Below are positions 3,697 through 55,306 of a stretch of 64,000 bases of DNA, piece after piece. Positions within the stretch are counted from its first letter, which is position 1, and every line of letters begins with the position of its first letter. The notes under the pieces were generated by a model. The model saw only the letters and a program-made list of their open reading frames with translations, ran no database searches and was not told where the DNA came from. The stretch lies in sequence record MK268344.1; one strand, 5' to 3'. The translations under genes were made by a program, and so were the position numbers.

Positions 3697-4812
3697 ATGA
3701 AAGAAAAAGTCTATGTTTATATTGGTCGTTTTCAAATGACTCATGGTGGTCATGAAGCTGTCATTAAACATGCATCACAAAAAGCAGACCGTTTAGTATT
3801 GCTAGTTGGTTCTTCTGAACTAGCTCGTGATCCTAAAAACCCATTTACGTTTGAAGAACGTAAATCAGTGCTAGAAGCAATGTCCCAACGTATCGTAAGT
3901 GAAGAATGGTCTAAAGGTCGTTCTGTGAAAGTAGATATCCTACCAATTCATGATTATACTTACAATAACACGAAATGGCTAAAAGAAGTACAAAACCAAG
4001 TACGTTCGGTTACTAACAGTACCGATATTACTCTTGCAGGTTGCCGTAAAAACGGTGATGAAAGTACATTCTATCTTGACTTCTTCCCACACTGGAAACA
4101 AGATTTTATTGAAGAAGTAACAAAAGTGAATCATGCGGTTCCAAAAGAATATCGCGAAATGGATTCTAAAGTAAATCCGAACCCTGCTATCAGCAGTACT
4201 GAATTACGTAATCAATTCTTCAGTACTAAGCAAGTGCCAGTTAATCTTCCACCCGAAACTACAGAGTTTCTAGAGAAGTTTAAAGTACGCAACGCAGACA
4301 TTCTTGATAATCTAGTTAATGAGCACAACTTTGTAGTACGTTATCGTCAACAGATGAATGAACAACTACCGTACACCAACATTCCATTTCTAACTGGTGA
4401 TGCATTGGTCGTTTGTGCTGGTCACGTATTACTAGTGAAGCGTCGTACTTATCCCGGTAAAGGTCTATGGGCGTTACCCGGTGGATTCTTTGATGCATGG
4501 CAAGACCAAACTCAAGTAGATACTGCTCTACGTGAACTAAAAGAAGAAACTAAAATCGATGTTCGTTATAAAGAATTGAAAGGTTCCATTGATAAGGTAG
4601 AAGAGTTTGGTGACTTTAACCGTTCACTACGTTGGCGTATTATTACCAAGTGTGCTTACATCAAACTCAATGGGAATAAACTACCAAAAGTTAAAGGTAG
4701 TGATGATGCTGAGAAAGCGTTTTGGGTTCCACTATCTGAAATTGCCAACAATCGTCACATGTTCTTTGAGGATCACCTAAGTATCATCGACACATTCCTT
4801 GGGATTCTATAA
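3697..4812 (+). CDS. bifunctional NMN adenylyltransferase / ADP-ribose Nudix hydrolase (NadM-Nudix, NatV-like)
   Basis: GRFQMTHGGH HxGH motif, ISSTELR, C-terminal PGKGLWALPGGF..ALRELKEET Nudix box, FEDH. Confidence 0.93.
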   Translation: MKEKVYVYIGRFQMTHGGHEAVIKHASQKADRLVLLVGSSELARDPKNPFTFEERKSVLEAMSQRIVSEEWSKGRSVKVDILPIHDYTYNNTKWLKEVQNQVRSVTNSTDITLAGCRKNGDESTFYLDFFPHWKQDFIEEVTKVNHAVPKEYREMDSKVNPNPAISSTELRNQFFSTKQVPVNLPPETTEFLEKFKVRNADILDNLVNEHNFVVRYRQQMNEQLPYTNIPFLTGDALVVCAGHVLLVKRRTYPGKGLWALPGGFFDAWQDQTQVDTALRELKEETKIDVRYKELKGSIDKVEEFGDFNRSLRWRIITKCAYIKLNGNKLPKVKGSDDAEKAFWVPLSEIANNRHMFFEDHLSIIDTFLGIL

Positions 4813-5354
4813 TGCTATATTGTCTCACGAGAGATGTATACAATGATTTGATGGCAATGCAAATGCATTTATCTGCCAAATACGATACAACGAACTGTAA
4901 ATATCTTGACATTATCCCACATAATGTTAGATTATGTAAAACAGAATCGTTAATCTTTAAAGCAGTTAGTAAACTGTACAATAATGGTGATTACTATAAT
5001 CACCATCTAATCATAAGGAACTGGTGTAGTACTATTCACCCGTTCACTAGTGATACAACTGATATGCATTTTCAGTATCCAGAAAATGATATTGGTTTTT
5101 GGGAATACACTTATGTTGCTCTTGGTGCTAAGAAAGTATTCATTAGTAATACAATGTATTCCAAATATATTTCAGTTAATGGTGGAGTTCCATACTACCG
5201 GATAGACGATGGGCTATCGGAAAAAGAATATACATTAGCTGAGATAGCAGCGAGTAATCAAAAATTCAAATTGGATGCAGTTTTTCCTGCTGAACCAAAT
5301 ATGTTCTCAGAAACTAATCTTGAATATATGATTCCTTACTCACTTATAATCTGA
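4812..5354 (+). CDS. hypothetical protein
   Basis: 180-aa ORF, TAATG overlap. Confidence 0.75.
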   Translation: MLYCLTRDVYNDLMAMQMHLSAKYDTTNCKYLDIIPHNVRLCKTESLIFKAVSKLYNNGDYYNHHLIIRNWCSTIHPFTSDTTDMHFQYPENDIGFWEYTYVALGAKKVFISNTMYSKYISVNGGVPYYRIDDGLSEKEYTLAEIAASNQKFKLDAVFPAEPNMFSETNLEYMIPYSLII

Positions 5355-5400
5355 AAGGCGAAGTAGCTTTTCTTAACAACTTCCAAAGAGGTAATAAAAT

Positions 5401-6879
5401 ATGAAAAATCTAAATGTAAACTTCATCCTAAACGTAGATAGTTACAAAACCGCACATGGTATGATGATGAAAGATGGTGTAATCGCACTAGAATCAAATA
5501 TCATTGCACGTAAGCCAACACCATACACTACTCACGTAGTAATGATGGGTCTACAAATCTATCTACAAGAATACTTAGATATTACTATCACCGTAGATGA
5601 TATCGATGAGGCTGAAGAAGAGACACGTTCTCGTGGAGATTATTTCGACCGCCCATTCTGGGAACATATTGTAGAAGTACACAAAGGTCGTGTACCACTA
5701 CATATCCGTGCAATTCCTGAAGGTACAGTAGTACCAGTAGGGATGCCATTAGTACGCTCTATGAGTACTGATCCAGCAGTTGTAGTCATTGCTAGCTATA
5801 TTGAAACTCAACTTCAACGTGCAGTGCATTATCCTACAACCGTTGCAACCAATGCTCGTAGTATCAAATCCTTTTTAGCTGACACTATGGAACGCCATGC
5901 TGGTCATCGCAACGTTGACTATCATTTGCATAACTTTGGTGATCGCAGTGCTTCTAGCTATGAATCCGCATGGTTAGCAGGTGTATCACACGCAGTAATG
6001 TTTAACGGTTCTGATTGTCTATTGGCAAACCGTTATATCAAACATTTCTATCACACTAAGAAAAATTATCTAAGCAGTGTAATGGCAACTGAGCATAGTG
6101 CAACTTGTTCAAACTCGGATGCAAACAAGCGTGATGATTTTAACATGGCCTTGAAAATGGTTCGTATTTGGGAAAAGATGTGTGATGATTATATTGCAAA
6201 AGGTTCAGTTGGTGTTCCACCAATCGTATCTATTGTAATTGATACTTATGATGCATATCGCTTTGTTCGTGAGTTTATCGGTACTCGTTTAAAATCAACT
6301 ATCGAATCAATTGCTCGTAAATGTCCGGGTGCTAAACTAGTAATGCGTCCTGATAGTGGTGACCCAACAACAATGCCAATCGAAATTCTAGAGATTCTAG
6401 CAGATAAGTTCGGTACTACTTTGAATGGAAAAGGTATGCGTGTACTACCACCATTTATTGGTGTAATTCAAGGTGATGGAATTATGGAAGAATCTATTCG
6501 TGACATTGTTTCGAACCTAGATAAACATAACCTATCACTTGAGAACATTGTGTTTGGTATGGGCGGTAAACTAGTACATCCACCAAAAGGCCGTGACCAA
6601 TTCAGTTTTGCAATGAAAGGTTCTGCACAACAACTAGAAGATGGTACGTGGGAAGATCTATTTAAAGACCCAATCACTGATGTAGGTAAACGTAGTCTTC
6701 GTGGTCGTGTAACTACTTTCAAATGTAAACAAAGTGGTAAAATTATGGCTGAACGTATCGAGCTAGCAGAAGTAAACCCTTTCTTAGAAGACATGATGGT
6801 TGATGTTTATAAGGATGGTGTAATTATGAACTTAAGTACTTTCGACGAAGTTCGTGAACGTGCTAACAAAGGTTTATAA
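5401..6879 (+). CDS. nadV: nicotinamide phosphoribosyltransferase (NadV/Nampt)
   Basis: DSYK, HNFGDR, ATEHS, VIDTYD, RPDSGDP, IQGDG, FGMGG motifs. Confidence 0.93.
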   Translation: MKNLNVNFILNVDSYKTAHGMMMKDGVIALESNIIARKPTPYTTHVVMMGLQIYLQEYLDITITVDDIDEAEEETRSRGDYFDRPFWEHIVEVHKGRVPLHIRAIPEGTVVPVGMPLVRSMSTDPAVVVIASYIETQLQRAVHYPTTVATNARSIKSFLADTMERHAGHRNVDYHLHNFGDRSASSYESAWLAGVSHAVMFNGSDCLLANRYIKHFYHTKKNYLSSVMATEHSATCSNSDANKRDDFNMALKMVRIWEKMCDDYIAKGSVGVPPIVSIVIDTYDAYRFVREFIGTRLKSTIESIARKCPGAKLVMRPDSGDPTTMPIEILEILADKFGTTLNGKGMRVLPPFIGVIQGDGIMEESIRDIVSNLDKHNLSLENIVFGMGGKLVHPPKGRDQFSFAMKGSAQQLEDGTWEDLFKDPITDVGKRSLRGRVTTFKCKQSGKIMAERIELAEVNPFLEDMMVDVYKDGVIMNLSTFDEVRERANKGL

Positions 6880-13243: not shown

Positions 13244-13272
13244 GGGACAAACACTCAACAATGTGATATAAT
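13244..13272 (+). promoter_or_regulatory. GGGACA-class promoter
   Basis: GGGACA-N17-TATAAT with TGTGA. Confidence 0.8.
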
Positions 13273-21477: not shown

Positions 21478-21506
21478 GGGACAAACCGGGGTATTGGTGA
21501 TATAAT
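21478..21506 (+). promoter_or_regulatory. GGGACA-class promoter of nrdD operon
   Basis: GGGACA-N17-TATAAT with GTGA. Confidence 0.8.
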
Positions 21507-36658: not shown

Positions 36659-37297
36659 ATGCTAGGTTATACCGTTAAGAAAGTACTACCACTTGAAGTT
36701 CTGGAATCATTAGAAACTCATGGTTCTATGAAATCTGCAACCGTTGATGGGATTACGTTTAATTATTTCCCAGAAAAGATTGCAACATTTCTTAAGAATA
36801 ATAAATGTATTTGCTGTGGAATACAAGCACATGAAGTACGTTTAGAAGAAGGTAAAGGTACTCATGCCATCTATGGTAATGTTCACCTTAACGTGTATGC
36901 TAAACATATCACGACTTGGGGAGAGTATTGGGATCTAATGACAGTAGATCATGCCATTCTCAAATCAAGAAACGGCCCTGATACTCAAGAAAACTTTAAT
37001 ACTATGTGTCGGAAGTGTAATAAACTTCGCGGTTCACGTTATCCCAATCTTCAAGACTTTCTATCTCGCTATGCAGAGCACGGAGAGTCTTTGATTACAA
37101 GTCGTGCTACATCTCTTCATCATTACCGTTTACGTAAACGTGAACAGGGTACAGAAGAATATAAAGCTATCGTGAAGCATCGTAATGAGATGCGTGAAGC
37201 AAAGGTCGCTGAGTATCTTAACGGTCTTTGTGCATCTCATGTAGGAGCTTACAATCGCCACAACAAAGCCTTGAAAAAAGCATTGACAGTAGGTTGA
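36659..37297 (+). CDS. HNH endonuclease-domain protein
   Basis: CICC..TVDHAILKSRNG..ENFNTMCRKCNKLRG. Confidence 0.8.
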   Translation: MLGYTVKKVLPLEVLESLETHGSMKSATVDGITFNYFPEKIATFLKNNKCICCGIQAHEVRLEEGKGTHAIYGNVHLNVYAKHITTWGEYWDLMTVDHAILKSRNGPDTQENFNTMCRKCNKLRGSRYPNLQDFLSRYAEHGESLITSRATSLHHYRLRKREQGTEEYKAIVKHRNEMREAKVAEYLNGLCASHVGAYNRHNKALKKALTVG

Positions 37298-37707: not shown

Positions 37708-38093
37708 TTAAAGATATTGATTTTTCAGGACTTGAAATCGTTAGTGCAGTCAAGAACATTACTGACATGTATGATGAAAAAGGGGTGATTTGTACTATTA
37801 CTTTTTTAAAAGAGGAAGATAGTATTTCGCATCTAACGGGAATTGAAGAATTAGTAGCTAAATTAGATTTAGAAGAAAATAAGAAGTATATTAAACTTTC
37901 GTATTCTTATACTATGGTTGAAAAAGAGATCGATACCGACCGCCCGGTGAAGGTGATTTTTACAGGAATAAATAAACCGTACAAAAAAATCTCCCGGTGC
38001 ACTGAGGACAGTACTGAACTGTTGCAGGACATTAAATTCATTGATGAGGTCTTTGAACGTTCACCTAATGAACTCAAACGAACATATCTATAA
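37704..38093 (+). CDS. hypothetical protein
   Basis: ATGA overlap. Confidence 0.75.
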   Translation: MIKDIDFSGLEIVSAVKNITDMYDEKGVICTITFLKEEDSISHLTGIEELVAKLDLEENKKYIKLSYSYTMVEKEIDTDRPVKVIFTGINKPYKKISRCTEDSTELLQDIKFIDEVFERSPNELKRTYL

Positions 38094-38097
38094 TCTT

Positions 38098-38126
38098 GGG
38101 ACAAACAGGTTTTTTTGTGATATAAT
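38098..38126 (+). promoter_or_regulatory. GGGACA-class promoter
   Basis: GGGACA-N17-TATAAT with TGTGA; no coding gene follows. Confidence 0.8.
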
Positions 38127-38132
38127 ATATGA

Positions 38133-38620
38133 TGAGGGATTACCCTCAGTCATACCAATCCTGAATGGCATGTGAAAGCATGAAAAATAAAAACCTGATC
38201 CTATCGAAAAGTAGATGGCAGATGAGTAGTTCATTCAGTACGATGTGCAAAAGAAACCCGTCAGAAATAAAGCGTAAGTGTAGTCGATTCCAACGAGACG
38301 TAAATCACACGCATCACGGCAATGCGGCACAATAAAGGCGTTAAGAAAACATAATCGCCCTAGATAGACATATGAGGCATACTCACCTAGTTGAAAGGGA
38401 GTCTCTTTACGGAGAGACAGCAGTATTTGTTGCTGAATTAGCAAGTACTGTAAGCGTGTGAGGAACACGACCGTTGTATGCAGACTGTAGTAGCTGGAAA
38501 CAGGACAACCCGCCAGCGATTACTTTTATTTCAAATGGATTGATCCGTCTGAAATTTGAGTGGAATCTACAAATTCAGATTGGTATGACTACCAGTGTCA
38601 GGTTTATCCTGATTTTTTTT
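38133..38620 (+). ncRNA. candidate large structured non-coding RNA (about 490 nt)
   Basis: Own promoter and terminator, about 42% GC by my count, 18-bp 5'/3' closing helix, many hairpins, no credible ORF. Confidence 0.75.
38597..38620 (+). terminator. intrinsic terminator
   Basis: GTCAGG-TTTAT-CCTGAT followed by a T8 run. Confidence 0.75.
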
Positions 38621-38786
38621 CGGCCCTCCCTTGTGGGGGGATGGAATTGGATCACAAACCGTGTCAATAATAAAAAGTACAAACAATATAATTTGAATTA
38701 TTATTTCTATAAGCGAAGTATGAGCGTAAGAGAAATAATAATTCTTAGACAATCGAAGATTGGCTAATCAAAAACAAGGATATGAC

Positions 38787-39374
38787 ATGAATTCACATGA
38801 ATTAGCTAAAAAGCTATTAGAGTTGCCAGAACACGAAGTGTTTATTGAAGTACAAACACCATCATCTAATGGTGTTGGTTTTGAATACAAAACAATAAAA
38901 ATTTCTGAAAAGAATCAAATCACTCCTTCTGGTATTTTCCTTAAGCCTGATGTTTTCTTTAACCATACTAATGTAAAATCTCCTAACAGTGAACCAGTTA
39001 TTGGTTCATATGCATTATACTTCAAAGATAAAACGGTAGTGATTAATCGTTATGATGAAAGTCGAATTAGTACTGCAACAGTTAAATTGTTGAGTACTGG
39101 AGAAAGTCGTGTTCACGAATATGGTACTTATAATATGACTATTCATGACAATTTCCAACATTTCAATCGTGGATTTGAAACTGATATTGTATTAGTAACT
39201 AATAAAGAAACATTTGGGGAAAAAGAACAAAAGCTATATCCAAATGCAGAGATTAGACATTTAGAAGATGTTGACTATGTTCGTGTATTAGTATCGTATG
39301 ATAAAGATACATGGACACCAACTTATAAGAGAATGACTTATGCAGAAGCAATCGAATTCGGTAAAAGTCTATGA
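38787..39374 (+). CDS. hypothetical protein (paralog of 41040..41576)
   Basis: AAGGA RBS before ATG 38787. Confidence 0.8.
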   Translation: MNSHELAKKLLELPEHEVFIEVQTPSSNGVGFEYKTIKISEKNQITPSGIFLKPDVFFNHTNVKSPNSEPVIGSYALYFKDKTVVINRYDESRISTATVKLLSTGESRVHEYGTYNMTIHDNFQHFNRGFETDIVLVTNKETFGEKEQKLYPNAEIRHLEDVDYVRVLVSYDKDTWTPTYKRMTYAEAIEFGKSL

Positions 39375-40509: not shown

Positions 40510-40699
40510 CGATCTATATGCACTAATTGAAGAAGTGGAACTAGAACAAAAATATTTGTTTGTAGTTTATGATATAGCACAGGATGATATCGGTATTGAT
40601 GTACTAGACTATGAATCCGAAGATTGTATAGATGGTGGATACTTTAATAGTATCGAAGAAGTAATTGAATTTGTAAAAGAACATAAGGGGAGTCTATAA
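40499..40699 (+). CDS. acidic hypothetical protein
   Basis: AGGAG RBS before ATG 40499. Confidence 0.75.
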   Translation: MSIDDLYALIEEVELEQKYLFVVYDIAQDDIGIDVLDYESEDCIDGGYFNSIEEVIEFVKEHKGSL

Positions 40700-41040
40700 T
40701 GAGTTCTGATCGCGTAACTTATGGCCTAATGGCTGAACTACAATTTGAAGTACCTAAAGATAAACGAGATGAAGTATATGATGAACTTGAAGAACAAAAC
40801 CTATTCATTAACTATGAAGGTACTTTGATTTATCATAAACAATTTGATGGGGAACCTTGGGAAACCGGATTCCTTTATGGAACCAAATCGTTTGGGGATA
40901 TGCAAAAATTCATTGACTTGTGCGATGAACATGGTATGATTGTTAAAGAAGAAACAGTTGAACCATTCCATGCAATTTGGTATGACGGGTGTGATGCACC
41001 AATGAATATCATTACGGTTAAAGAATTCCGGGAGGATTAA
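40699..41040 (+). CDS. hypothetical protein
   Basis: TAATG overlap. Confidence 0.8.
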   Translation: MSSDRVTYGLMAELQFEVPKDKRDEVYDELEEQNLFINYEGTLIYHKQFDGEPWETGFLYGTKSFGDMQKFIDLCDEHGMIVKEETVEPFHAIWYDGCDAPMNIITVKEFRED

Positions 41041-41576
41041 TGACTGCCAAAGAATTAGCTGAATTACTATTACAAACCCCTGATTTGGAAGTATACACTG
41101 AAGAATGTCATGTACCAGATTTTTCTGATGCATACTATTCAGTTGAAAAAGTTATTGGGGTAACTAAAACTCCTGATGGTATTTTTATCAACAACGAGTA
41201 CATTAGTGGTAAAGAACCACGTTCTCCATCACAGAAACCACAAATTGGTTCAGTACGAATTATGCTAAAAGATGGTCAATGGTTTCGTCAAGGTAATGAT
41301 GGTCTAAGTGTCCATAATTTACATGATTTCATTGAATATGGTTTCTTCATCACTTACGGTGGATGGAATTCAGAAAATTGGTTAATGTATGATGAAAGTA
41401 GAGTAGATGATTACATTAGTAGTAAAATTGAAGACACTGAAACCGAACCATATAGCAGTATTGAAGTACAATACATTGAAATTTTGACAGAAGTACATTC
41501 TGATACGTGGCATGAAACATGGCAGAAATTTTCTTTTGAAGAAGCACTTGAATTTGTAAAAGCGAGGATTATCTAA
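41040..41576 (+). CDS. hypothetical protein (paralog of 38787..39374)
   Basis: GGAGG RBS; shared termini. Confidence 0.8.
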   Translation: MTAKELAELLLQTPDLEVYTEECHVPDFSDAYYSVEKVIGVTKTPDGIFINNEYISGKEPRSPSQKPQIGSVRIMLKDGQWFRQGNDGLSVHNLHDFIEYGFFITYGGWNSENWLMYDESRVDDYISSKIEDTETEPYSSIEVQYIEILTEVHSDTWHETWQKFSFEEALEFVKARII

Positions 41577-48334: not shown

Positions 48335-48363
48335 GGGACAAACTGCTTTTTATGTGCTATAAT
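48335..48363 (+). promoter_or_regulatory. GGGACA-class promoter
   Basis: GGGACA-N17-TATAAT with TGTGC. Confidence 0.8.
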
Positions 48364-55277: not shown

Positions 55278-55306
55278 GGGACAAAAACATGAAAATGTGA
55301 TATACT
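55278..55306 (+). promoter_or_regulatory. GGGACA-class promoter
   Basis: GGGACA-N17-TATACT with TGTGA. Confidence 0.75.

Follow-up and report, generated by a model that had tools for sequence, protein, structure and literature searches.

An undescribed family of large, pseudoknotted non-coding RNA in Rak2-like jumbo phages and enterobacterial defence islands

Salmonella phage Munch encodes a member of an undescribed large folded RNA family: it is absent from Rfam 15 and from the inspected records, and no publication or annotation describing it was found in the literature searched. The window analysed here is a 64,000-nt stretch of record MK268344.1 (Munch 62001-126000), and all coordinates are positions in this window, on the + strand unless stated otherwise. 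Sequence comparison showed that 38098 to ~38770 is a single self-contained non-coding transcription unit for a large folded RNA, the transcript itself being predicted. The unit comprises a phage-type promoter, a 5' hairpin, a core of ~490 nt (at least 12 helices), an intrinsic terminator and a structured, putatively read-through extension of ~150 nt (elements E1-E4). The window copy carries the invariant-core pattern of the family, a composite 12-bp helix, helices P1-P6 with their junction blocks and a whole-length profile match, together with its own promoter and E1-E4.

Locus, promoter and coding potential

The unit lies in an unannotated gap of 693 nt, between CPT_Munch_186 (end at 38093) and CPT_Munch_187 (start at 38787). 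An earlier note, made from the letters of the sequence alone, had placed a GGGACA-N17-TATAAT promoter at 38098-38126. The consensus scan confirmed it and added an extended -10: GGGACA (38098-38103) is followed by a 17-nt spacer with a final TGA and by TATAAT (38121-38126), and transcription is predicted to start at ~38133. The motif GGGACAAAC-N11-TGnGATATAAT was found five times in the window (0.43 expected), and a GRRACR-N14-TGnTATAAT promoter lies 293-420 nt 5' of the core motif in nearly all family members. Judged by its sequence, the promoter of the unit matches the 'divergent RpoD-like' class (TGAAACG plus a classic -10) reported for phages CBB and GAP32 and, in CBB, 5' of DNA-synthesis genes (PMC5259590).

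The predicted transcript opens with the hairpin UGAGGG-AUUA-CCCUCA (38133-38148). Most paralogues have a hairpin at this 5' position, with differing sequences, and it would probably stabilise the RNA; the TGAGGG/CCCTCA pairing of the earlier note holds in close relatives only, where it is compensated (e.g. GAGGA/UCCUC in relative L091). Counted from its predicted start through the last U of the U8 tract, the core RNA measures ~488 nt (38133-38620), as supported by the family profile, covariation and coding tests. A recount of GC content gave 42.1% (38131-38600) vs 28.3% (38701-38760), reproducing the contrast of 42% vs 28% first noticed; the window mean is 35.1%.

The initial impression that the region holds no credible ORF was borne out, since ORFs on both strands of the locus do not exceed 97 aa. 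The longest stop-free stretch (94 codons, minus strand, 38238-38519) is open in just 4 of the 58 homologues aligned below, its length differences among homologues are not multiples of three, and substitutions in helices are compensatory; a protein-coding gene was rejected on these grounds. The mini-ORF AUGGCAGAUGAGUAG was rejected because its frame is not conserved and its AUG belongs to helix P2 and varies, and a mini-ORF in E2 was excluded because one-nucleotide indels do not keep the frame.

Covariation-supported fold of the unit

Homologues were compared in a structure alignment of 58 non-redundant sequences (<96% identity) with 87 base pairs. Canonical pairs filled 95.6% of the pair cells, vs 34-41% with slid partners and 72% after shuffling; compensatory changes on both sides were counted in 66 of the 87 pairs, and the covariation score was 0.61 vs at most 0.20 across 300 shuffles. 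The earlier note had named compensatory covariation among homologues as a check on its central proposal, a stand-alone, densely structured large non-coding RNA, and this proposal is now strongly supported. For the 3' domain, an independent run of a counting tool (19 sequences) gave 95.8% vs 71.1% canonical pairs, both-side changes in 34/43 pairs and a score of 0.729 vs 0.232, with none of 500 shuffles as high. The family profile matched the window once only, over 38151-38667 (nhmmer, E 1.5e-104). The single-sequence minimum free energy fold (-144.5 kcal/mol, z-score -4.9; 0/100 shuffles equally stable) uses an inverted repeat, 38148-38166/38573-38590. The helices drift with compensatory changes, whereas many nucleotides of the unpaired junctions do not vary; the blocks without variation are GAAAAGUA, RUGAGNAG, GAAACCCGU, CACGGCAAUGCGGC, GAUAGACAUAU, UAAGGGAG, CGACCGUUG, GAAAC and CAACCCGC.

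The 5' domain (38161-38238) is closed by P1 (38161-38168/38231-38238), in which CTGAATGG pairs with TCATTCAG (94% canonical, both sides changed in 3/8 pairs). P1 encloses two hairpins: P1a (CATGT/GCATG, 38169-38173/38178-38182), supported by comparative analysis, and P2, formed by CUG 38195-38197/CAG 38219-38221, CC 38200-38201/GG 38217-38218 and AUC 38203-38205/GAU 38214-38216 around the conserved loop GAAAAGUA (P2c: 94% canonical, all three pairs compensatory). The conserved junction RUGAGNAG follows. The central domain (38244-38359) consists of P3 (38244-38248/38327-38331; 100% canonical, 4/5 pairs compensatory), the invariant P4 (CCGU 38258-38261/ACGG 38316-38319), a variable domain enclosed by P4 (38262-38315), whose two exchangeable forms are swapped between close relatives, and the hairpin P5 (38337-38341/38355-38359; 98% canonical, 5/5 pairs compensatory, up to six pair types). 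Two strings had reminded the earlier reader of ROOL; the one at 38215-38229 proved to be the conserved junction plus part of P2, and the other (38281-38295) part of the variable domain. In the P6-P7 region (38360-38418), the invariant junctions GAUAGACAUAU and UAAGGGAG flank the hairpin P6 (38373-38376/38382-38385; 96% canonical), which is followed by the hairpin P7 (GTCTCT/AGAGAC, 38401-38405/38414-38418; 94% canonical). Both show compensatory changes, and P7 is enlarged by an inserted module in many paralogues.

Three covariation-supported pseudoknots (PK1-PK3) are held in the core. P8 is a 13-bp hairpin (38420-38451) with compensatory changes in 12/13 pairs, and its 7-nt loop (CUGAAUU, 38433-38439) is the 5' strand of PK1. 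The pseudoknot core (38455-38517) contains the hairpin P9 (CGTGT/ACACG, 38455-38459/38465-38469; 92-93% canonical), the invariant CGACCGUUG, P10 (GTTGT/ACAAC, 38473-38477/38505-38509; 100% canonical), the 5' strands of PK2 and PK3, GAAAC, CAACCCGC and the 3' strand of PK3. P10 and PK3 (GCTGG 38493-38497/CCAGC 38513-38517; 100% canonical, 4/5 pairs compensatory) form an H-type pseudoknot. P11 (38519-38522/38561-38564, in the region 38519-38564; 90% canonical, 3/4 pairs compensatory) closes an optional peripheral module (...GGAUUGAUCCGUC..., 38529-38556); in other paralogues this module is found in P7 and not in P11, so that the insertion site shifts.

The continuous 12-nt 3' strand CUACA-AAUUCAG (38567-38578) pairs both with the P10 internal loop (PK2, 38486-38490/38567-38571; 99% canonical, 5/5 pairs compensatory) and with the P8 loop (PK1, 38433-38439/38572-38578), and one strand thereby clamps the two loops together. 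Six of the seven PK1 pairs are canonical in 58/58 sequences and the seventh in 56/58, with three to five pair types at five of the seven, two types at another and one pair invariant. PK1 and PK2, taken together as a composite 12-bp helix, reach 99-100% canonical pairs, and 11 of the 12 pairs show compensatory changes (58 sequences); the tool run on 19 sequences counted 11 pairs, of which 10 were compensatory. The composite-helix sequences differ among paralogues of one genome, the helices of which are mutually orthogonal. Trans targets were sought for the guide-like PK1/PK2 loops, and no second match to the 12-mer or its complement was present in the window (≤1 mismatch).

Several helices of the earlier fold are supported by the comparison, namely CATGT/GCATG (P1a), GTCTCT/AGAGAC (P7), the long stem at 38420-38451 (P8), CGTGT/ACACG (P9) and GTTGT/ACAAC (P10). 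That fold had missed the three pseudoknots and contained two wrong pairings, and its terminal stem turned out to be lineage-specific. The proposed CTG-GAAA-CAG hairpin, canonical in just 10-16 of 58 sequences, is replaced by PK3. The ends had been paired over 38148-38166/38573-38590: an inverted repeat of 18-19 nt is present there, and its outer part forms the terminal stem P0, with 38148-38160 as 5' strand pairing with 38578-38590. The inner CTGAAT/ATTCAG fails because it conflicts with the supported P1 and PK1. P0 pairs without a mismatch over 13 bp in Munch and over 12 bp in L091, where three positions are compensated; it is absent in EJP2 and other paralogues, with ~40% canonical pairs over the family. 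On sequence comparison, the outer 13 bp are specific to the Munch lineage.

The hairpin and T8 tract that the earlier note had read as a terminator (GTCAGG/CCTGAT) were also returned by the scan, as the intrinsic terminator GUCAGG-UUUAU-CCUGAU plus U8 (38597-38620). A hairpin with a U-run occurs at this position in 36/58 copies, and the mature 3' end is uncertain because 22/58 copies are without a U-run terminator. The first estimate of ~490 nt is right for the core; the unit is longer, since conserved structured elements continue beyond the terminator to ~38770. Directly 3' of the terminator, the G-rich hairpin E1 (CCCUCCCU/GGGGGG, 38624-38643) is present in all paralogues and island copies, and its changes are C<->U opposite G alone, which are tolerated only on the + strand. 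E2 (38644-38669) is a conserved single-stranded block (...AUCACAAACCGUGUCAAUA), the end of which repeats the motif of 38590-38601. One copy of this duplicated motif, A(U/C)C-NN-(C/U)GUCA(G/A), stands before and one after the terminator and E1, and the two copies co-vary (own identity 0.668 vs 0.611 permuted; 0/2000 permutations).

Further downstream, a long AU-rich hairpin was found by folding (E3, 38695-38744; strands 38695-38708/38731-38744), the loop of which resembles the family consensus ACGAAGUGA. Its outer stem GAAUU/AAUUC is kept in 29/29 aligned sequences, with an alignment gap at two of the five pairs in three of them. A weak fragment match to Rfam Spy1186876 (38692-38747) was discarded, as it covers the E3 hairpin only. 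The hairpin E4 (G-A-CAAUC-GAA-GAUUG-G-C, 38748-38764) lies inside the conserved block AAUUCUUAGAC...GGCUAAU (38740-38768); in 29 sequences the three pairs at its centre are 100% canonical and alternate between AU and UA. E4 is retained even where the next gene is convergent, and it abuts the next start codon in some paralogues. E2 and E4 were each considered as a general phage promoter or operator motif, and this was rejected because each occurs a single time in the 64-kb window.

Occurrence and comparison with known RNAs

The invariant-core pattern CGACCGUUG-N-GAAAY-NGNN-CAACCCGC, which forms P10 and PK3 and is present in the window at 38468-38512, was used for scanning and retrieved 50 IMG/VR, 73 metagenome and 7 genome stretches. 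All seven genome stretches and every full-length aligned copy match the family profile. Looser patterns were swamped by chance GC-rich matches in IMG/VR, and the 22-base pattern was required. The family is found in three to five copies per genome in Rak2-like jumbo phages (four to five per ~350-kb contig in the core-pattern scan) and as one copy, beside an integrase, in small enterobacterial defence islands; its hosts are Enterobacteriaceae and Xanthomonas. To call it the RNA of an enterobacterial jumbo phage, as was done at the outset, is correct but too narrow, as it is multi-copy and also present in chromosomal islands. Munch has at least three copies, confirmed at 40.5, 100.1 and 182.0 kb, and a fourth near 293 kb is expected by analogy with EJP2. 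Each paralogue occupies a syntenic site across genera; neighbouring genes are syntenic within each paralogue class only.

Full-length copies adjoin integrases in islands of Serratia, Enterobacter, Buttiauxella and E. coli (E 1e-80 to 1e-113). Each 10-kb island has one copy, located within the element and not itself the integration target. The conserved island backbone consists of int, the RNA, a cI-like gene and HTH_35, and the RNA is outside the variable cargo. Repeated exchange between phages and islands is indicated because the island copies are polyphyletic, nested among the phage paralogues and similar (up to 80.6% identity over 552 nt) within unrelated flanks. Island-phage homology stops right after the second copy of the duplicated motif. 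A conserved neighbouring protein was rejected as a partner of the RNA, as no protein family is common to the phage loci and the islands. In this analysis the RNA was the first sequence element to turn up in both lytic Rak2-like jumbo phages and small integrative Enterobacteriaceae defence islands, and it offers a concrete handle on how the two interact.

Rfam 15 returned no family match at gathering score for the whole window and no ROOL, GOLLD, tmRNA, RNase P or intron model at E≤10 for 37900-38900; for ten other members, no match to the same RNAs was obtained at E≤5. The fragments returned were scattered, sub-threshold and not consistent across members. The kinship with ROOL or GOLLD suggested by the earlier note was not upheld, neither ROOL (RF03087) nor GOLLD (RF01998) giving a covariance-model match, and the findings favour its alternative of a new class. 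The ncRNA002 and ncRNA004 of the related jumbo phage PA5oct, defined by RNA-seq, have no homology to the family (nhmmer --max) and so lend its expression no indirect support.

Likeness to ROOL and GOLLD remains in size class (~500-800 nt), in stand-alone phage or prophage genes, in the many covariation-supported helices and pseudoknots, and in highly conserved unpaired nucleotides. The new family differs by being multi-copy, with diverged paralogues at syntenic sites, and by having no tRNA genes nearby (ARAGORN: 0 tRNA/tmRNA genes). Hosts differ too: ROOL and GOLLD come mainly from Firmicutes and from rumen or lake samples, the new family from Enterobacteriaceae and Xanthomonas. Oligomeric cages have been shown for ROOL and GOLLD (10.1101/2024.12.08.627333).

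With tmRNA the RNA shares a length of several hundred nt, several pseudoknots and island genes beside integrases, and its short frame superficially resembles a tag reading frame. It has, however, no tRNA-like end or CCA and is inside the island instead of being the integration target. A tmRNA was rejected on the ARAGORN and Rfam results, the lineage-specific, not tRNA-like 5'/3' stem and the non-conserved AUG of the mini-frame. Group I and group II introns and RNase P RNA resemble it in having a pseudoknotted core, invariant junctions and peripheral domains that change insertion point, and the reading of one contiguous strand by two separated loops recalls the EBS/IBS pairings of group II introns. 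These were rejected as well: there is no Rfam match, the models recognise no domain V-like or P4-like element, no gene is interrupted, and the unit is intergenic with its own promoter and terminator.

It is rare for a new class of large non-coding RNA with a high degree of structure to be found. Those found so far, OLE, GOLLD, ROOL, raiA and HEARO, each gave rise to new studies of structure and function. The present family is attractive for its exceptionally clean covariation support, its unusual topology (an H-type pseudoknot with a two-loop clamping strand), the orthogonal helices of paralogues within one genome, and hosts that are easily worked with (phages of Salmonella and E. coli, e.g. 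Munch, 121Q and PBECO4).

Possible functions

The best explanation, held tentatively and at a little below an even chance, is that the RNA is an abundant trans-acting folded molecule that binds a host factor, the latter being arrived at by elimination. It would act in trans and would be made in large amounts (abundance being predicted) from the three to five diverged gene copies of each phage genome. The invariant junctions around the pseudoknot core may create a specific binding or catalytic pocket. Because the unit survives in islands without a neighbouring protein gene common to phages, the partner would most likely not be a dedicated phage protein but either a conserved component of the host or, by self-assembly, the RNA itself; a host component could be sequestered, re-programmed or scaffolded. 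Invariant junctions, a module that changes insertion site and exchangeable variable domains are traits typical of RNAs with an important three-dimensional fold. A purely trans-acting RNA does not account for the fairly regular intervals between copies or for the conservation of DNA past the terminator.

Both features count in favour of the main rival, an RNA-primed replication-origin unit, which we consider unlikely yet deserving of weight. Promoter, transcript, U-tract, E1 with its G6 run, E2 and the AT-rich spacer with E3/E4 would together be the origin, and the transcript, through a persistent hybrid, would prime leading-strand synthesis, as in ColE1 RNA II and T4 oriF/oriG; there would be several origins per jumbo genome and one per small island, replicated by host or helper enzymes. 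The likeness to these systems is confined to the layout: a promoter lies ~500 nt 5' of a conserved zone, the ~500-nt transcript is structured, and a G-run (in E1) is near an AT-rich stretch (28% GC). T4 also has several dispersed origin copies, and oriF and oriG use middle-mode promoters. The promoter class of the unit, reported 5' of CBB DNA-synthesis genes (PMC5259590), is comparably linked to DNA synthesis. Eneladusvirus-type genomes (355 kb) have five copies on the same strand, at ~30, 93, 174, 258 and 333 kb, with gaps of 47-85 kb; by calculation, five points placed at random on a circle would all be at least 47 kb apart with a probability of ~0.013, an argument from five points, the fifth position of which was taken from sister genomes. 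No recognisable replication gene was found in the backbone of the single-copy islands, and G.U-tolerant hairpins would also suit the non-template DNA strand displaced in an R-loop. Against an origin, neither pseudoknots nor extensive invariant junctions are known from ColE1 RNA II or the T4 origin primers, and known primer transcripts need neither three pseudoknots nor so many invariant unpaired bases. Unlike in these primers, an intrinsic terminator precedes the putative initiation zone, and its rU8:dA8 is the worst place for a stable hybrid. GC skew does not change at the locus, a result that is uninformative because these genomes are transcribed almost entirely from one strand. A fuller version, which we hold to be rather doubtful, is that the units are the origins of Rak2-like phages, with a middle-type promoter and a folded primer RNA, where termination or read-through at U8/G6 and the hairpins would lead to an R-loop and replisome loading, and that the islands are satellites borrowing the origin for replication and mobilisation by jumbo phages. 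The origin reading, if true, would locate the replication origins of these phages and reveal a new RNA-dependent mode of initiation.

The paralogue-specific 12-bp recognition helix, the co-variation of the two motif copies, the end of island-phage homology right after the second motif and a density of invariant junction nucleotides resembling that of catalytic cores would suit a self-processing or trans-cleaving ribozyme, in which the P8 and P10 loops place a substrate strand as the EBS1/EBS2-IBS1/IBS2 pairings do in group II introns and the duplicated motif provides processing sites. Such a ribozyme is improbable: no Rfam ribozyme model is similar, the 12-mer and its complement occur nowhere else in the window, and the unit interrupts no gene. 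The duplicated, co-varying motif could instead supply two alternative partners in a cis-acting transcription element, either a put-like processive antiterminator that reads through T8 and downstream terminators or a regulatory leader in which a GAC(G) strand pairing with motif 1 or motif 2 decides termination. The structured, G.U-tolerant elements past the terminator, the position of most copies at the head of co-directional gene arrays and the abutment of E4 on start codons agree with this. We nevertheless consider it very improbable. In 121Q, Munch and others, the unit at the endonuclease VII / baseplate locus is opposed by convergent genes and a bidirectional terminator, which leaves it nothing downstream to regulate and means that it is not a leader; downstream genes differ between paralogues, and known antiterminator RNAs are ~70 nt. 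A role as decoy or sponge in the contest between phages and host defence, which overlaps the trans-acting RNA preferred above and is compatible with it, is quite improbable as a separate explanation. In this view the phage copies would titrate a host factor for defence or RNA targeting, and the island copies, next to defence cargo, would interfere with the phage RNA as bait or as dominant-negative forms. We know of no defence system with such an RNA, PADLOC identified no protein partner next to the island RNA, and the RNA belongs to the conserved backbone rather than to the cargo. The islands do carry Cap4-nuclease, PDC-M45 and PDC-S16 candidates, the nesting of their copies among phage paralogues implies repeated exchange, and jumbo-phage satellites with defence cargo have precedent (PMC12595487).

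In sequence records, homologous DNA is annotated as protein-coding in 7t3, PHA46, fENko-Kae01 and Yen9-04 (g159/g160), and spurious "hypothetical protein" or "terminator" calls lie over family loci in several GenBank records.

A non-coding, independently promoted RNA in Salmonella phage Munch

The RNA of Salmonella phage Munch (MK268344; 100% identity with the window) is a genuine, non-coding, independently promoted and elaborately folded RNA, and the observation of the earlier note was confirmed on much stronger grounds than its author could have known. Window positions convert to Munch positions by adding 62000. The unit is contained in an unannotated gap of 693 nt between CPT_Munch_186 (ends at 38093) and CPT_Munch_187 (starts at 38787). 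Consensus scans recovered both signals previously proposed to bracket it, on the + strand: the promoter GGGACA-N17-TATAAT with a TG-extended -10 (38098-38126) and a terminator hairpin followed by T8 (38597-38620). The claimed GC contrast was also borne out (42.1% at 38131-38600 versus 28.3% at 38701-38760; window 35.1%). The single-sequence fold reached -144.5 kcal/mol, compared with -113.3 ± 6.3 for shuffled sequences (z = -4.9). There is no credible ORF: of 58 homologues, only 4 keep open the 94 codons on the minus strand that make up the longest run without a stop, and lengths differ among the homologues by numbers not divisible by three.

In nearly every family copy, a GRRACR-N14-TGnTATAAT promoter was found 293-420 nt 5' of the core block. 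Five instances of its Munch form are present in the window, where chance predicts 0.43; the other four, GGGACAAAC-N11-TGnGATATAAT, were located by motif scan on the + strand at 13244-13272, 21478-21506, 48335-48363 and 55278-55306. The motif probably represents, in Munch, the "divergent RpoD-like" promoters of phages CBB and GAP32, which consist of TGAAACG and a classic -10; in CBB, 11 of the 18 promoters of this class sit 5' of a region with many DNA-synthesis genes (PMC5259590). At another Munch copy, outside the window, a 5' hairpin with a U-run (Munch 40,512-40,541; L326 913-942) directly follows the -10 box of the RNA itself and is labelled in GenBank as the terminator of the upstream gene. 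Such a hairpin may double as a terminator for incoming transcription.

Covariation-supported fold and conserved 3' extension

For structure determination, 58 full-length copies (<96% identity) were aligned with MAFFT L-INS-i and runs of covarying columns were sought. The following + strand helices were obtained: P1 (38161-68/38231-38), P1a (38169-73/38178-82), P2 with loop GAAAAGUA (38195-97/38219-21, 38200-01/38217-18, 38203-05/38214-16), P3 (38244-48/38327-31), P4 (38258-61/38316-19), P5 (38337-41/38355-59), P6 (38373-76/38382-85), P7 (38401-05/38414-18), P8 (38420-32/38439-51), P9 (38455-59/38465-69), P10 (38473-77/38505-09) and P11 (38519-22/38561-64). Covariation also supported three pseudoknots on the same strand: PK1 (P8 loop 38433-39/38572-78), PK2 (38486-90/38567-71) and PK3 (38493-97/38513-17). 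Across the 87 pairs, 95.6% of cells are canonical, versus 34-41% with partners slid by 1-3 columns and 72% after shuffling; both sides change in 66 pairs, and the covariation score is 0.61, versus 0.07-0.10 (slid) and at most 0.20 (300 shuffles). As a second check, the 3' domain of 19 diverse sequences was aligned independently with MAFFT and evaluated with a counting tool: 95.8% of cells were paired (71.1% shuffled, 36-47% slid), both sides changed in 34 of 43 pairs, and the score was 0.729 versus 0.232, with none of 500 shuffles as high.

Together, P10 and PK3 make up an H-type pseudoknot. Canonical pairs account for 99-100% in each of the three pseudoknots, where a position can show as many as five pair types, and the sequences of PK1 and PK2 differ among paralogues of one genome. 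The 3' strand of PK2 runs straight into that of PK1 (CUACA-AAUUCAG), so that the internal loop of P10 and the hairpin loop of P8 are clamped together by a single strand of 12 nt.

The helices listed in the earlier note were confirmed, with two exceptions. Its CTG-GAAA-CAG hairpin was not sustained, being canonical in only 10-16 of the 58 sequences, and its 18-bp pairing of the RNA ends survived in part: the inner CTGAAT/ATTCAG segment competes with the covarying P1 and PK1 and was rejected, whereas the outer 13 bp (38148-60/38578-90) are lineage-specific. These are perfectly complementary in the window and in the related stretch L091 (three positions compensated in L091), about 40% canonical across the family, and absent in EJP2 and the other paralogues.

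While the helices drift with compensation, long unpaired blocks are invariant in all paralogues (GAAAAGUA, RUGAGNAG, GAAACCCGU, CACGGCAAUGCGGC, GAUAGACAUAU, UAAGGGAG, CGACCGUUG, GAAAC and CAACCCGC). A module of ~25 nt (...ACAAUAUAGAUCCGUC...) occupies either P7 or P11 (P11 in the window, 38529-38556), and the domain enclosed by P4 has two forms, swapped between close relatives. The invariant blocks, movable module and exchangeable domain are signs that the three-dimensional fold matters.

Conserved sequence runs on 3' of the T8 tract in all paralogues, as four + strand elements: E1, a G-rich hairpin (38624-43); E2 (38644-69), conserved in all paralogues; E3, a long hairpin (38695-38708/38731-38744); and E4, a hairpin (38748-64) whose three central pairs switch between AU and UA and stay canonical throughout 29 sequences (100%). 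The sole variation in E1 is C<->U opposite G, which requires folding on the + strand. E2 and E4 each occur once in the window, hence neither is a general regulatory motif. The U-run terminator is missing in 22 of 58 copies, and E4 is kept in 121Q-type copies, in which the gene on the 3' side is convergent and a bidirectional terminator comes after the unit; it is thus very probable that read-through transcripts are made and are of consequence. Two copies of the motif A(U/C)C-NN-(C/U)GUCA(G/A) (38590-38601 and 38656-38667) flank the terminator together with the E1 hairpin, and these copies co-vary (identity within the same sequence 0.668 versus 0.611 permuted; 0 of 2000 permutations as high). 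The duplication would fit two alternative partners for a GAC(G) strand lying 5' of them; recognition of both copies by a single factor could also account for it, as could a function in processing.

An HNH endonuclease gene (CPT_Munch_184, 36659-37297) lies two genes 5' of the RNA locus. In some genomes, HNH/NUMOD4-type insertions directly follow the unit, as in two metagenome copies (L247 and L290) with homing endonuclease genes directly 3' of E4; the intergenic sites around the unit may be homing hot-spots.

A multi-copy family common to phages and bacterial islands

The RNA is a member of a conserved multi-copy family, not a one-off. Homologues were detected by blastn in 62-71 phage records, at two to five places per record, all in Rak2-like jumbo phages: Asteriusvirus, Eneladusvirus, Alcyoneusvirus (K64-1, RaK2), GAP32, CBB, XaC1/XbC2, Hallingskeid and Kaldavass. 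A 22-base pattern from the most conserved block of the family matched 50 IMG/VR stretches (four to five matches per ~350-kb contig), 73 metagenome stretches and 7 bacterial-genome stretches. With the family profile (nhmmer), exactly one copy was found in the window (38151-38667, E 1.5e-104) and two more elsewhere in Munch (40,540-41,045 and about 182,018-182,523), giving confirmed copies at 40.5, 100.1 and 182.0 kb. Copies are syntenic across genera and all on one strand. In Eneladusvirus-type genomes (354-358 kb) they lie at ~25-30, 93, 174, 258-260 and 333-335 kb, these being the best places from four different paralogue queries, with the fifth position per genome inferred from sister genomes. 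The gaps are about 47-85 kb; by our calculation, five random points on a circle would all be at least 47 kb apart with a probability of about 0.013. In one paralogue class (L023, L223, L240, L305), the gene 3' of E4 begins MIDNRDRAIGALVGLAVGDALG... and, by eye only, looks like an ADP-ribosylglycohydrolase-like gene.

Full-length members were also found in seven bacterial assemblies (nhmmer E 1e-80 to 1e-90), where they reside in small integrative elements and keep the whole unit: a TGAAAC...TGnTATACT promoter, the core and E1-E4. In Serratia fonticola, a serine recombinase, two ParB-like genes and the RNA are followed by a duplicated rof and by tilS, which suggests integration in or beside rof, with a replacement copy. 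Two tandem rof genes of 87 aa each lie at the element junction (L322, strain GTA-SR07 chromosome, 4775-5490). Strain RIT714 carries corC, a tyrosine integrase and the RNA; Enterobacter chinensis, ppdD/hofB, a serine integrase, the RNA, HTH_35 and a cI-like S24 repressor; a metagenome contig, a serine integrase, the RNA, then LprI and a Cap4 nuclease domain. The backbone is uniform across at least 10 contigs: integrase (same strand, about 400 nt 5' of the RNA for the serine type and about 685 nt for the tyrosine type), RNA, cI-like repressor (opposite strand), HTH_35, membrane protein (286 aa) and LprI.

Two of 5426 complete E. coli genomes carry the RNA. In LR-29-1, where PGAP annotated nothing at the RNA, the copy is part of a ~10-kb island next to ffs, between ffs and ybaA (positions 4959-15303 of L325, the stretch NZ_AP027515 3470142-3488515), with the PADLOC candidates PDC-M45 and PDC-S16. 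The island contains an IS3-disrupted tyrosine integrase, the RNA unit, PDC-M45 (dual-OB and DUF488 proteins; the adjoining DUF4326 gene has no PADLOC match), PDC-S16 (DUF2188) and a DNA invertase. This copy is 80.6% identical to that of Serratia phage BF over 552 nt; homology ends directly after E2 and the flanks are unrelated. A FastTree phylogeny of the RNAs shows no single island clade: island sequences are polyphyletic and fall among the clades of phage paralogues, which implies more than one transfer of the unit between phages and islands. For a satellite relationship of these islands to phages, the jumbo phage transduction of Pseudomonas islands carrying an integrase and defence cargo, recently shown (PMC12595487), would be a precedent, not evidence.

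No Rfam 15 family reached its gathering score anywhere in the window, and ten other members gave inconsistent fragments only. ROOL, GOLLD, tmRNA, RNase P, intron, HEARO and 6S models had no match (permissive filters, E<=10, 1 kb), and ARAGORN detected no tRNA or tmRNA. The suggested kinship with ROOL or GOLLD was accordingly rejected; the strings that had been likened to ROOL belong to P2 and the RUGAGNAG junction (38215-29) and to a variable domain (38281-95). Among sub-threshold Rfam matches, Spy1186876 alone had a low E-value (0.0026, at 38692-38747, with 25 bits where gathering requires 208); this fragment match falls on the AU-rich hairpin E3 and is meaningless. The family shares no homology with the ncRNAs of phage PA5oct. 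An RNA is annotated in no record at the homologous loci; several place hypothetical proteins, "repeat_region" or "terminator" there. Short hypothetical proteins are annotated over the RNA and E1/E2 in 7t3, PHA46, fENko-Kae01 and fHe-Yen9-04 (g159, g160; L003 1743-2045); such frames lack conservation, and their annotation is very probably an artefact. The family was not described in any of the literature searched, and the alternative raised in the earlier note, a new class, is supported.

Possible roles of the RNA

The reading that we favour, tentatively, is a folded RNA acting at high dosage on a conserved host component or on other copies of itself. Action as a folded molecule is favoured by the 5' hairpin, terminator, pseudoknotted core with invariant junctions and movable peripheral modules, and three to five strongly promoted genes suggest the dosage. 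No protein family common to the phage-locus and island neighbourhoods was found, which makes a conserved host component or the RNA's own copies the more likely partner. A role as decoy in defence conflicts, which overlaps with this explanation, appears improbable as a separate account, and a ribozyme hardly less so.

The main rival, an RNA-primed replication-origin unit, is rather unlikely: it explains the promoter class, how the copies are spaced, why islands have one each, and the conservation of DNA 3' of the terminator, but leaves the complexity of the fold and the U8 terminator unexplained. Occurrence of the RNA at loci with convergent neighbours speaks against a leader role, and cis-acting antitermination or attenuation is the least probable of these readings. 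The function of the RNA is directly testable in laboratory strains.
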